Shown here in pieces: positions 1-6,764 of a stretch of 64,000 nucleotides of DNA (position 1 is the stretch's first letter; every line of letters begins with the position of its first letter). Below the pieces are notes generated by a model that did not search any database, was not told where the DNA came from, and was given only the letters and a program-made list of their open reading frames with translations. Source of the DNA: Bigelowiella natans CCMP2755 (taxonomy: Eukaryota; Protista; Cercozoa); the NCBI GenBank assembly GCA_000320545.1, contig ADNK01000313.1:186001-250000 (forward strand). The letters are read 5' to 3'. The translations under genes and the position numbers were made by a program.

Positions 1-3000
1 ATTGTCTCAATGACACTGCACTAAAGAAGGGGTGGTGATGATGGCGGTGATGATGGCGGTGGTAATGGTGGTGGTGATGGTGGTGGTGATGGTGGTGATG
101 GTGGTCACGATTACGTACTCTTGTGCTCCACCGGGCGCGAGCCTGAATCCAGTGTAGACCTCATCGAAGATGAGAACGATGTTGTTGTCGGTACACACCT
201 AAATTTTATGATTTGAAGATGATGGTGACAACGATATCCGATTAGAATCATCGCAGTAGTAAGTAGTCACAAGGATCATCATCATCATCATCATCATCAT
301 CATCATCATCCCTGAATTGGTGCAGAGTGACCTTGCGAAGTTTATTGAGCCAGTTCTTGTACGTCTGTTCAAGCTCTTGCAAACCGCTAGACTTCTTCTT
401 TTCGGAGCTCTTGCTTCCAGCCTTATTTAGAGATGTGATGCGTTAGCGGAAGTTTTGCAGTAGTAGTTTAGAATCAGAATTATTATTTATCTCATGAGTA
501 GCAATCATTTTAACGACATCTCTTGGAGGTGGAATATCAAGGAAAAGAAAAAGGAGAAAAATATTGGGATATTGTACCATATTATGCATACCCTTTGCGC
601 ACGAACATAAATCAATCTCTCTCTCTCTCTCTCTCTCTCTCTCTCTCTCATGTATATATTGGACACACCGACAAGCATATCATAAACATATATAAATACA
701 TATTAATATAAATATAAATATATATATATATATATATATATATATATGTATTTATATATCATACGATTTGAGGACAGGCACGTAGAAAACACCTTGCGCG
801 AATTCGATGCAAGAACTAGATCAGAGGGTGGAGGAGAGTTTGGATGGAATGCTTGAAGCGGATTGATAAGCACAGCTGCAATCTCTCCCCTCCTCATACG
901 AATCACATCCAGGGAATTCGGGTCCAAATCCTTCAAAGTGATCACGTCCGCTGCGGAACGTTCGTTTCCAGCTATCGTCTTTGAGGAAGAGAGGTGGGGG
1001 GGGGGGGTAACAGAGGAGGTTAGAGGGAGAGAGAGAGAGAGAGAGAGAGAGAGAGCGAGAGCAGGCGAGAGAGAAAGATTATTCATTCTCAATCTATTGA
1101 CATCATAACCTATGTAGTCGTCAGGGTTTTTGATTACCATTCATCATTATCATCATCATCATCATCATCATCAAAGTAGTAGTTGCAGTAGTACCTGTAC
1201 GCCATCCCACCATCCGTGGTAAGCACCTCCAAAAACAACAACCATTCTGCGTTTTTTGTTGAATCGAGCGAGCCTTGTAGCACACATGACTGCCTCAGTA
1301 CCAGACATGTGGAAGGATACCTCGCCATCAGGTTTTTGAGCGACCTAAAAGAAAGAAAAGAGGAGGAAGAGGAGGAGGAGGAGAGGTAAAACGATTTAGC
1401 TGAGAGCAAGCAAATTCTTCGTCACCACTACCATCAGCACTATCACTACATCGTCGCACTACTGCTACTACTACTACTACTACTACTACTACTACGACGA
1501 CGACGACGAATACTACTGGTAGCGGTACCTCTTGCAACATTTGAATGTTCTCCTTTAGGACAGGGTGTAGAGGTCCAAGCACAGGTCCCAGGTTACCGAC
1601 TTTCTTGATGCCCTGATTCAAGAACTTCTTGTACAAGTCGTAACCGCACACGTTGACTCCGTAGGATCCAGCGATATCGATCAAGACATTGTTGTCAACA
1701 TCCTTCAGATTCATGCCTGATAATGATGTATGTGATGGAAACGACTATCGTTCATTTTTGTTGCAACGATCTCCTCCTCTTCCTCAACACCAGAGCACCA
1801 CAGTCATCATCATCATCATCATCATAATCAATTCTTTCCTCCCTTTTCCACCTACTACTGTAATGGTATATTAGTAGTTCACCCACCCACCCTTGGTTTC
1901 TTCGACGACTGTCGTTGGATCACACCACTCCGTGAGGTGCTGGCGGAAAGGGAGGAATACACGGTTGGATGCTGCGAATCGTAGGTCTGAAAATCCTTTA
2001 CGGAAGTCGTTCGAGTACTTGAGCGACTTAGGAAACTTCGCATTCCATTTCTCTTGCAACTTCTTGAAAGCTTTTTCGCGCTTTTTCGCAGTTTCTTCAG
2101 AGCAACCGTCAGCGCGGAAAAACATTCTCTTGGAGAAGGAATAGCTTGGCACTACGTGGGACACGACACGGATGATCGTCGAGAGGGTGTTGGTTTGGAT
2201 AAGAGTGAACAACATGACGTACACACGCCTCATGGCCACAAGTACGGACACAATAGCCAAGAACCCCATCACGTCGTCGGTAAATCCACCAAAAATCCAA
2301 AATAAGATGCCGATCATGGTGTACCTAGTTGTTTTTTATCGTGGAAAGATAATTTACTAAATTTCAAAATCATTTATGAAATGTTTCCGCTGCTAATCTT
2401 AAACTTTTTTTTTTACGACATCTATCTCATCATTATCAATCTCATCATATCATCATTATCATCATCTTACGTACATGTTGCAACGACGACTCATTCCTGG
2501 AGCATTGAGGAGGTACACAATGGTCAGCACAGCTGTGGCGGTATAGGGTGCTTGGATGTTGAGACGCTCAAGCACCAAATACGCACACAACAAGACTACT
2601 GTCCAGAGATACCTAGAATCATGTAATAGAAGTGAGTGCGGTTCTCGTGGATTGGTGTCTTTGGGTGATCGACTATCATCGTACGCATCTCTTTACTCCA
2701 TTGCTGTTCGGGGCGAAAAGAAGTTTGAAGGAAAAAATCTGAGCAGAAGCAGCAAACTGCTATTTTATTTCCTCTATTTCTTCTTCTTCTTCATGGGTGT
2801 GCTATGTTATTACTGTCGAGCCTCGAAGCTTGGCAAATGGATAACCAGGAAGGAGATGAGAATGATCAATCCAAATTCAGAAAACGTCTGCTGAGACGAA
2901 CGCGCTGCAGCTGCTCCTCCAGGGAACGAAGCGAGCATGTGCCGCACAGTGGACCAAGAGGGAAGGACGCCCGACCATTGGATGAGCTTGTCATCTAACA

Positions 3001-6000: not shown

Positions 6001-6764
6001 GAATTGCACGTTGGTAAGATTCTTCGATGCTTGAAGCAACTCCCCTTGAAAAGTTGCGTAACCCATAGGTTTCGGATAAGTGTAGATTATCTGTGAGTGT
6101 GAATAAGTTTGTATAAGTATGTATATTCTCAAAATGCTTGTTTTTACCATACAATGCCCGAATACAAAGATATAACATAAATTACATTTACATACAATAT
6201 ATATATATATATATATATATATATATATATAAACACATATATTCGTATATGTGTTTTGTGTGTGCGCGCTTGCGCGTGCGTGTATGTAAGTAAATACATA
6301 TATGATACAAAAGAATTCTCGCAAAAGATAGGTGATCAACAAAACAATAAGCAACGATGCTGCATTTAAATATTATCAGTGATAAATGTGAATGCAAACC
6401 TTAATATCGTTGGGAAGCATCTTGGAGATGTAAAGGAGTTGCTCAGGGACCTGTGAGATGAAATCCTTCGCGGAGATTACCACGGTAACGTCCTGAAGAT
6501 CATTCAGTACATCAATCAGTATCCTTCTTACCAATTATGCCAGTATCATGAACCACACAGGTCATATTTTAGTTTTAATACCTTAACAAGCGTTGCCTCG
6601 TCCGTTGGAGGAAAAAGAGTAGGGATGGGGTCGGGAACACCAGGAAGAAAAGCATTACGAGCTATCCTTACAAAGAATGCGCCAGGTACTTTCGCACGGT
6701 AAAAACCGACCAGTACAGCAAGGATCACTGCCAGGTACGATCCTGTCTTCAAGCCCACCGCCAT
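1..6764 (-). CDS. Multi-exon (>=21 exons, ~1070 aa in window, 3' end outside window) fusion protein: N-terminal signal anchor + GT2/GT-A glycosyltransferase + linker + 4-5 TM helices + class III PLP aminotransferase (glutamate-1-semialdehyde aminomutase-like)
   Basis: ATG at 6764. Phase-compatible GT-AG exons give [20 protein letters not shown]...[10 protein letters not shown]...[13 protein letters not shown] (DxD-position motif)...[12 protein letters not shown]...EYMDLQ...VWYVPSARV (GT2), then hydrophobic helices at 2900-2200, then [51 protein letters not shown] and [19 protein letters not shown] (class III aminotransferase). The PLP lysine lies beyond the window. Confidence 0.85.

Follow-up and report, generated by a model that had tools for sequence, protein, structure and literature searches.

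The locus studied here raises the question of whether one gene of the alga Bigelowiella natans encodes a single protein that joins a glycosyltransferase, a membrane bundle and an aminotransferase, and what such a protein could make. In this study, we analysed 64 kb of the B. natans CCMP2755 genome (assembly GCA_000320545.1, 91.4 Mb; contig ADNK01000313.1, positions 186,001 to 250,000), hereafter the window. All coordinates are those of the whole window, except where L004 is named, which is the 8 kb preceding the window start. We found that the gene, on the minus strand, is real, expressed and nuclear, and that it encodes one polytopic membrane protein of 1255 amino acids (aa). The N-terminal half carries a domain with a predicted GT-A fold, and the C-terminal part is a class III pyridoxal phosphate (PLP) aminotransferase whose bacterial relatives lie among membrane-lipid genes. 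An aminated glycoconjugate is tentatively proposed as its product.

The gene and its transcripts

The gene model was obtained by six-frame reading and local splicing. It consists of 23 coding exons separated by GT-AG introns, which join into 3768 nt with a single terminal stop. The start codon is the ATG at 6764, and an in-frame stop codon lies upstream of it (6819-6821). Twenty of the 23 coding exons were located in the window, from 6764 down to 119. The other three, with the stop codon, extend up to 1.18 kb before the window start, and the aminotransferase is therefore cut by the window edge. The eight introns without a joint, located within simple repeats or ahead of the window, were placed by the GT-AG rule and by colinearity with a Euglena mutabilis protein (P0006). 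An earlier note on this DNA had counted 21 GT-AG exons; this is near the content of the window, 20 coding exons and one exon of the 5' untranslated region (UTR), and the full gene has 23 coding exons. The four motifs it had quoted were all found in frame (a 10-aa motif at 1285-1314, YHGWWDG at 1201-1221, a second 10-aa motif at 838-867, and FDEVYTGFR at 142-168). In a local comparison, the spliced model was identical, letter for letter, to the public model JGI Bigna1 85697 (P0149, 1255 aa). The fusion has thus been in the public annotation since the genome was annotated, without description or characterisation.

Transcript mapping was performed with positions 951-6950 (6000 letters) against one raw RNA run (X21) and the contigs of three other studies. 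In a sequence index, about 20 runs contained 36-45% of the words of 801-6800, as would be expected of sequences made up of exons alone. The RNA contigs contained 15 joints, 14 at coding introns and one at an intron of the 5' UTR, and all of them read CT..AC on the plus strand, that is, GT..AG on the gene strand. Record 7 of X9 (3814 nt) ran from 6766 through every exon to 1527 and continued for another 1155 nt, a length that the model predicts for the last exons together with about 44 nt of 3' UTR. Contigs of X1 and X5 had these joints too, from 1715 to 4943 and beyond. The RNA nature of these Logan contigs, which are assemblies, was a guess of the tool, and the raw run X21 yielded 14 reads and no joints. 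However, the contigs skip 14 coding introns and are therefore RNA. In addition, exon 1891-2324 by itself reaches from the last two transmembrane (TM) helices across the juxtamembrane extension to the start of the aminotransferase, so that no splicing argument is needed at this junction. One transcript from the start codon into the aminotransferase, and one polypeptide, had been proposed in the earlier note, and the intron-skipping contigs from three studies bear this out.

We also found the same fusion in other protists, as the earlier note had suggested looking for. Colinear proteins of 1189-1292 aa are present in the chlorarachniophyte Partenskyella glossopodia, in the euglenids Euglena gracilis and E. 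mutabilis, and in several environmental eukaryotes, and a 154-aa fragment from Isochrysis galbana belongs to a further cluster (P0162, 1136 aa; P0171, 1227 aa). A 5393-base contig (L101; JGI metagenome 3300007522, GC 60%) encodes the fusion in three exons, corresponding to aa 6-277, 275-349 and 360-1243 of the B. natans protein, and comes from a GC-rich eukaryote. P0007 (872 aa), first labelled bacterial, is only the last exon of this gene, and the contig of P0003, also first labelled bacterial, looks eukaryotic as well; the origin of metagenomic sequences once labelled bacterial is uncertain. Other protists have proteins of about 640-657 aa that comprise the N-terminal half only, with one C-terminal TM helix, and a partial N-half of 529 aa was found in Phaeothamnion. 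In one of the environmental eukaryotes the fusion gene adjoins a PAT1 gene.

Domains of the protein and their relatives

The fold of the N-terminal half was predicted, with a 31-row alignment, on the homologue P0164, which has 654 aa, consists of the N-half alone and is 39% identical over this region. The AlphaFold model had a pLDDT of 87.6 and a pTM of 0.85. VIA-align matched it to GalNAc-T3 (Z 19.4, rmsd 3.5, 277 residues aligned), GalNAc-T1 (Z 18.6), B4GALNT1 (Z 16.6) and many GT2 enzymes (Z 13-15), and nearly all of the 97 chains at Z of at least 8 were glycosyltransferases. Foldseek also returned glycosyltransferases (E 1e-8, probability 1.0), and the structural matches included heparosan synthase, K4CP and hyaluronan synthase. 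As judged from the model, the fold of this domain is GT-A. The earlier note had called it a complete GT2 domain. P0149 gave no match to Pfam GT2 (PF00535; gathering threshold 23.3 bits) at E<=0.1, and sub-threshold scores were obtained for exon 5788-6087 (12.7 bits) and for the homologues P0006 (22.4) and P0146 (19.2). An Atlas search with aa 1-610 gave weak GT2-like leads only (0.91). The structural matches thus carry the fold, and membership in GT2 is not established, since the Pfam score lies below the cut-off.

The domain was compared with known GT-A enzymes, namely GalNAc-transferases (GT27), B4GALNT1 (GT12) and the GT2 enzymes SpsA, K4CP, TarS and DPMS. All have the same Rossmann-like fold over about 280 residues (Z 13-19) and an acidic 'ED' motif after the nucleotide-binding half. 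However, identity to the B. natans domain is only 7-16%, H-x-D stands in place of DxD or DxH, the motif behind strand beta4 that binds metal and nucleotide sugar in GT-A enzymes, and the Cys subdomain and the fusion to a TM bundle and an aminotransferase are additional. The H-x-D (MHNDVY, 5902-5919) has both H and D conserved in at least 90% of the 31-row alignment, in which the LEDH motif (5486-5506) and several more acidic residues are invariant. No close bacterial relative was found for the N-terminal half. The earlier note had considered the protein possibly assembled from bacteria-derived modules; the aminotransferase half has clear bacterial kin, and the plural was not borne out.

The region of aa ~346-600 had been described as a Cys-containing linker of about 250 aa. 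The cysteines are there, four of them near-invariant (aa 466, 490, 556 and 563), but the region is a conserved alpha/beta subdomain with a confident predicted fold (pLDDT mostly 85-95 in the P0164 model) rather than a linker. It had no match in Pfam or NCBIfam, and an Atlas search with aa 340-745 gave no usable match.

Five consecutive hydrophobic helices follow at aa ~608-721, as seen by hydropathy and by mapping the AlphaFold helices of P0006 onto the B. natans protein; four to five had been expected. The whole P0006 protein (E. mutabilis, 1189 aa; 38-row alignment) was modelled with a pLDDT of 82.6 and a pTM of 0.59. With the N-terminal anchor, the five bundle helices make six spans, which would put the GT-A half on one side of the membrane and the aminotransferase on the other. 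A lumenal GT-A half is suggested by the conserved cysteines and by the resemblance to type II Golgi transferases. Behind the bundle lies a juxtamembrane extension with the motifs FFRADG (2105-2122) and FSDLRF (1976-1993), which are common to the bacterial membrane aminotransferases.

The aminotransferase is a member of PF00202 (110.3 bits for P0149 against a gathering threshold of 30.5); Pfam on single exons gave only 26.5 bits. Its closest solved relative was the aminotransferase (AMT) domain of the mycosubtilin synthase MycA, a polyketide synthase/nonribosomal peptide synthetase (PKS/NRPS), and not HemL, to which the earlier note had likened it. MycA AMT (6kfm) was the best match in the Protein Data Bank (PDB) both by sequence (E 3.6e-46, against 1e-30 for Arabidopsis glutamate-1-semialdehyde aminomutase, GSAM) and by structure (E 1.7e-25, TM-score 0.83, against about 1e-21 for GSAMs). 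The PLP Lys (YGKT, aa 1067, outside the window) and the PLP-binding Asp (FDEVY, 142-168) align with those of MycA AMT and GSAM. MycA AMT (6kfm, 6kfr, 6kfu) also shares the SGTEAVM, YHG..DGV, DE..TGFR and YGK..GGG motifs and an N-terminal extension. However, it lies inside a soluble PKS/NRPS and takes as its substrate a beta-keto acyl chain bound to an acyl carrier protein (ACP), whereas the B. natans domain has no carrier, is membrane-anchored and GT-A-fused, and is ~27% identical. The placement between carrier and condensation domains that marks MycA-like AMTs of PKS/NRPS was not seen in the B. natans protein. These comparisons place the aminotransferase in a clade of membrane-anchored enzymes that is separate from HemL and closest to the AMT domain of MycA. 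Together with the last TM helix and the juxtamembrane extension, the aminotransferase half shows 45-78% identity in blocks to its bacterial kin.

HemL has the same fold type, belongs to class III, has the PLP Lys and Asp conserved and formed the second-best group of matches. However, it is a soluble enzyme of ~430 aa, whereas the B. natans protein is membrane-bound, has 1255 aa and belongs to a separate clade. The score against the hemL equivalog TIGR00713 was 166.4 bits, far below the cut-off of 527.3, and a canonical hemL was found elsewhere in the B. natans genome (C3581:4470-5726, 599 bits). An IQ-TREE phylogeny of 40 aminotransferase domains, in which HemL was represented by two sequences only (B. 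natans and Nitrospira), joined the fusion proteins and the bacterial membrane aminotransferases in one clade (100/100), with a branch of 4.4 changes per site to HemL. The inside of this clade was a polytomy that gives no direction of transfer between bacteria and eukaryotes. A position within canonical HemL, which the earlier note had named as contrary evidence, was not observed in the tree. Nitrospira moscoviensis has a true hemL (636 bits) in addition to a member of the clade. In the four alphaproteobacteria searched, a clade member was present and no hemL match exceeded the cut-off; alphaproteobacteria make 5-aminolevulinic acid (ALA) through ALA synthase (ALAS). The view that this is not a tetrapyrrole enzyme is upheld by these data, and reconstructions of the tetrapyrrole pathway should leave proteins of the clade out. 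The canonical hemL (also L007 1495-2733, minus strand) is a single open frame of ~412-430 aa whose matched part is intronless, compared with the 23 exons of the present gene; no exon for a targeting peptide was seen upstream of it, where no search for one was made.

A previous report described a 'non-canonical GSA-AT' subfamily that is uncharacterised (Cihlar et al. 2016, PMC5115734). Its algal members come from dinoflagellates, Aureococcus, Emiliania and Micromonas, Pelomonas belongs to its proteobacterial subclade, and TM segments are drawn in a figure. The same report discusses the subfamily as a putative plastid GSA-AT (glutamate-1-semialdehyde aminotransferase), contains 'glycosyl' 0 times and does not list B. 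natans in the subfamily (PMC5115734). Our bacterial set also includes Pelomonas (L065). The subfamily is probably the same aminotransferase clade, as compared by description and not by sequence. The literature searches found no paper with the glycosyltransferase fusion. The statement of the earlier note that this architecture had not been described therefore holds for papers on the fusion; the fused model itself is public, and the clade was probably reported in 2016.

Bacterial gene neighbourhoods and the possible product

We next examined the bacterial relatives of the aminotransferase. A pattern scan with one genome per species gave at least 591 bacterial loci, the best 80 of which were examined by clustering their open reading frames and assigning Pfam names to cluster representatives. 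In the bacterial proteins, a single N-terminal TM helix precedes the FFRADG...FSDLRF extension and the aminotransferase. A GT4 glycosyltransferase gene was a neighbour at 63 of the 80 loci, abutting on the same strand at 16. A gene resembling phosphatidylserine decarboxylase (PSD) was found at 46 of the 80, a calcineurin-type metallophosphoesterase of the PlcP type at 25, a PEMT-like methyltransferase at 15, BtaA (DUF3419) with a methyltransferase at 8, and an LPG-synthase-TM-like gene also at 8. A His-rich, weakly Mpo1-like TM domain was fused to the C-terminus of the aminotransferase at 25 of the loci and encoded beside it at 43. The pattern extended over about ten phyla (Methylomirabilota, Binatota, Nitrospirota, Acidobacteriota, Actinomycetota, Planctomycetota, Myxococcota, and alpha-, beta-, gamma- and zetaproteobacteria). 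As far as the literature search showed, this conserved cluster is uncharacterised, and no paper found joins its lipid genes with the aminotransferase. The neighbours are, by the families to which they are assigned, head-group and lipid-remodelling genes.

The GT4 gene overlaps the aminotransferase gene on one contig of Methylomirabilota, and genes for phosphonate uptake and C-P lyase come next. P0036 is a fragment of a GT4-aminotransferase fusion. Taken with the algal GT-A fusion, it means that a glycosyltransferase has been joined to the aminotransferase at least twice, with different folds. Clusters of this kind can be viewed at L013 4677-8734, L061 4937-8994 and L027 2846-9916. The GT4 gene encodes ~900 aa in some Planctomycetota and Zetaproteobacteria, and the PSD-like gene of L047 carries a fused RraA-like aldolase domain.

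Since the bacterial kin lie in membrane-lipid head-group clusters, a lipid head group is now favoured as the product. The B. natans protein may make an amine-bearing glycoconjugate at the membrane, for which the head group of a polar lipid without phosphorus is the likeliest candidate, although this is proposed tentatively. The aminotransferase would convert a carbonyl (aldehyde or ketone) on a membrane-bound intermediate to a primary amine with an amino acid as donor, and the GT-A domain would transfer the sugar moiety of a nucleotide sugar. The GT-A domain and the Cys subdomain would be lumenal and the aminotransferase cytosolic, this topology being the weakest step. The bundle would hold the lipid-linked intermediate or pass it between the two catalytic domains, thereby coupling the two membrane faces. 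The interpretation of the earlier note was broadly right and over-specific, and its aminated glycolipid or glycan is still a proposed product. A wider proposal, possible but somewhat doubtful, is that the clade is the signature enzyme of a widespread phosphorus-sparing pathway to an amine-bearing, possibly N-methylated glycolipid. Bacteria would encode it as a cluster of GT4, aminotransferase, Mpo1-like oxygenase, PSD-like and PEMT-like genes, and several algal lineages as one trans-membrane polypeptide with catalytic domains on opposite faces. A role in the synthesis of the betaine lipids diacylglyceryl hydroxymethyltrimethyl-beta-alanine (DGTA) or diacylglyceryl carboxyhydroxymethylcholine (DGCC) was considered as an idea only; it has no support, and a literature search for such a link gave nothing relevant.

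Several observations weigh against the lipid proposal. No member of the clade has a known substrate, product or activity. The lipid link comes from the bacterial neighbourhoods and not from the alga, and the partner there is a GT-B enzyme (GT4), not GT-A. The nearest structural neighbours of the GT-A domain glycosylate proteins (GalNAc-transferases) as well as lipids (B4GALNT1). Because this modelled domain scores below the Pfam GT2 threshold and has H-x-D for DxD, its transferase activity is unproven. The arrangement of domains in the whole-protein model is not reliable at its pTM. R23, K25, R33 and R36 follow the anchor helix, and by the positive-inside rule they argue against a lumenal GT-A half, contrary to the cysteines. 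The Mpo1-like matches were sub-threshold (15-18 bits against 24). No Mpo1-like match was found in B. natans with one query (L061:7557-8243), which leaves its absence unproven. Homology between the five-helix bundle and the bacterial Mpo1-like TM domain was rejected (hhalign probability 0.1%).

A glycan or glycoprotein enzyme of the secretory pathway was considered as an alternative. A lumenal, type II-like GT-A domain would glycosylate a protein or polysaccharide, and the role of the aminotransferase would be to provide or alter an amino sugar or some other amine substituent of a cell-surface polymer. The best structural matches of the N-half, which are the two polypeptide GalNAc-transferases and polysaccharide synthases, point in this direction; the N-terminal anchor and the four conserved cysteines suit a lumenal domain, and a class III aminotransferase of the type acting on sugar 6'-aldehydes was among the PDB matches (7lld, E 3.7e-11). 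However, the bacterial kin sit in lipid head-group clusters (PSD-like, PEMT-like, BtaA/B, PlcP-like) and not in polysaccharide export clusters, a conserved TM helix of its own anchors the bacterial aminotransferase in the membrane, and no carbohydrate-binding or lectin domain was found. We regard a glycan product as unlikely.

The likeness to MycA raises a further alternative, in which the aminotransferase acts on a beta-keto acyl chain and yields a beta-amino fatty acyl or long-chain amine lipid that the GT-A domain then glycosylates, so that the amine is on the acyl or alkyl part and not on the sugar. It fits the rank of MycA AMT as closest solved relative by both measures and the N-terminal extension common to the two, from aa 788 where the alignment starts. 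The identity to MycA is low, however, and no ACP, ketosynthase, condensation or other thioester-handling domain was found in the protein or among the conserved bacterial neighbours. Such a route therefore appears improbable.

A divergent, membrane-anchored GSAM for tetrapyrrole synthesis is barely plausible: hemL models were the top NCBIfam matches, IMG labels the bacterial relatives as GSAM, and Cihlar et al. regarded a clade that is probably this one as a putative GSA-AT, but the sub-threshold TIGR00713 score, the long and fully supported branch, the canonical hemL of the genome and the alphaproteobacteria that carry the aminotransferase without a hemL match over the cut-off all oppose it. 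That the fusion is an artefact, a read-through or chimeric model of two adjacent genes, deserves next to no credence: the guessed RNA nature of the assembled contigs and the jointless reads of X21 would allow it, but it is opposed by the intron-skipping contigs of three studies, the single exon across the TM-aminotransferase junction, 3768 nt without a stop or frame break, and the same colinear protein in distant lineages, including transcriptomes and the three-exon genomic contig.

The lipid head-group proposal can be set beside known systems. The PlcP-Agt and BtaAB systems are known responses to phosphorus stress (PMC4796936, PMC8528852). The bacterial kin resemble PlcP-Agt in that the aminotransferase adjoins a PlcP-type metallophosphoesterase and a glycolipid-type GT4 transferase, sometimes with BtaA/BtaB. 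However, no paper found in the literature search combines the published PlcP-Agt systems with an aminotransferase, PSD-like or Mpo1-like component, and the link to the algal protein is by aminotransferase homology only. The earlier note had also pointed to ArnB/ArnC and HpnO/HpnI, in which a glycosyltransferase and an aminotransferase likewise cooperate toward an amino-sugar or amino-lipid. These are pairs of separate proteins, and no sequence relationship to the B. natans protein was seen. ArnB belongs to the DegT/DnrJ family and not to class III, and acts on a nucleotide sugar; because of this different aminotransferase family, the ArnB/ArnC analogy is loose.

Both halves come from well-known enzyme superfamilies, and public annotation calls the aminotransferase clade HemL. 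The bacterial gene context is the most useful new lead, and the fusion together with the conserved bacterial clusters offers a specific and testable entry to a part of membrane-lipid biochemistry that is still missing. The fusion is carried by chlorarachniophytes, euglenids and probably haptophytes, and the aminotransferase clade by numerous bacteria of soil and water, Nitrospira, Methylomirabilota and Methylobacterium among them. Lipid remodelling under phosphorus stress occurs in these groups, and several polar-lipid pathways in them are still unassigned.

Feature coordinates and repeats

The features of the gene are listed in Table 1.

Table 1. Features of the B. natans fusion gene, in window coordinates unless L004 is named
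Feature	Position	Strand	Basis or remark
5' UTR intron, GT-AG	6782..6926	-	joint 6781/6927 in X1 RNA contig; non-coding first exon upstream of 6927
Coding exon 1: ATG, hydrophobic anchor (aa 1-30), start of GT-A	6582..6764	-	hydropathy 1.9 over aa 1-19; RNA contigs 6581-6781
Predicted GT-A-fold domain, aa ~50-345, exons 1-7	4778..6617	-	AlphaFold model of homologue P0164, VIA, Foldseek
GT-A exons 1-7	6582-6764, 6400-6492, 5838-6090, 5634-5749, 5429-5569, 5176-5263, 4778-4944	-	
Cys subdomain (alpha/beta), aa ~346-600, exons 8-13	2911..4631	-	alignment, confident predicted fold
Cys-subdomain exons	4593-4631, 4313-4452, 4016-4108, 3622-3877, 3233-3377, part of 2814-2994	-	
Five-helix TM bundle, aa ~605-735, parts of exons 13-15	2155..2896	-	AlphaFold helices of P0006 and hydropathy
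TM-bundle exons	2814-2994, 2475-2612, 1891-2324 (parts)	-	
Juxtamembrane extension, aa 745-815	1915..2125	-	phmmer of exon 1874-2335; P0042 sequence
Class III (fold type I) PLP aminotransferase, aa 816-1226	1..1912, continuing before the window	-	PF00202, PDB matches
Aminotransferase exons in the window	1891-2324 (part), 1529-1716, 1195-1344, 793-978, 332-421, 119-198	-	
Aminotransferase exons before the window	L004 7651-7858, 7258-7440, 6822-7037		last holds the stop codon

The introns are full of simple repeats, including trinucleotides of the (GTG/ATG)n type, (GA)n and (TA)n, at 31-111, 267-310, 616-650, 700-760, 1022-1064 and 1458-1495. These repeats have matches of 79-100% identity at more than 170 other genomic positions and read as long pseudo-open reading frames (poly-H, poly-D and poly-V). 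RNA contigs of all three studies have loose ends at 3015-3045 and 4127-4130, within the introns 2995-3232 and 4109-4312, and one X5 contig links 4145 back to 3015 with 39 foreign letters. The loose ends are probably other transcripts with the same trinucleotide repeats, or assembly chimeras.

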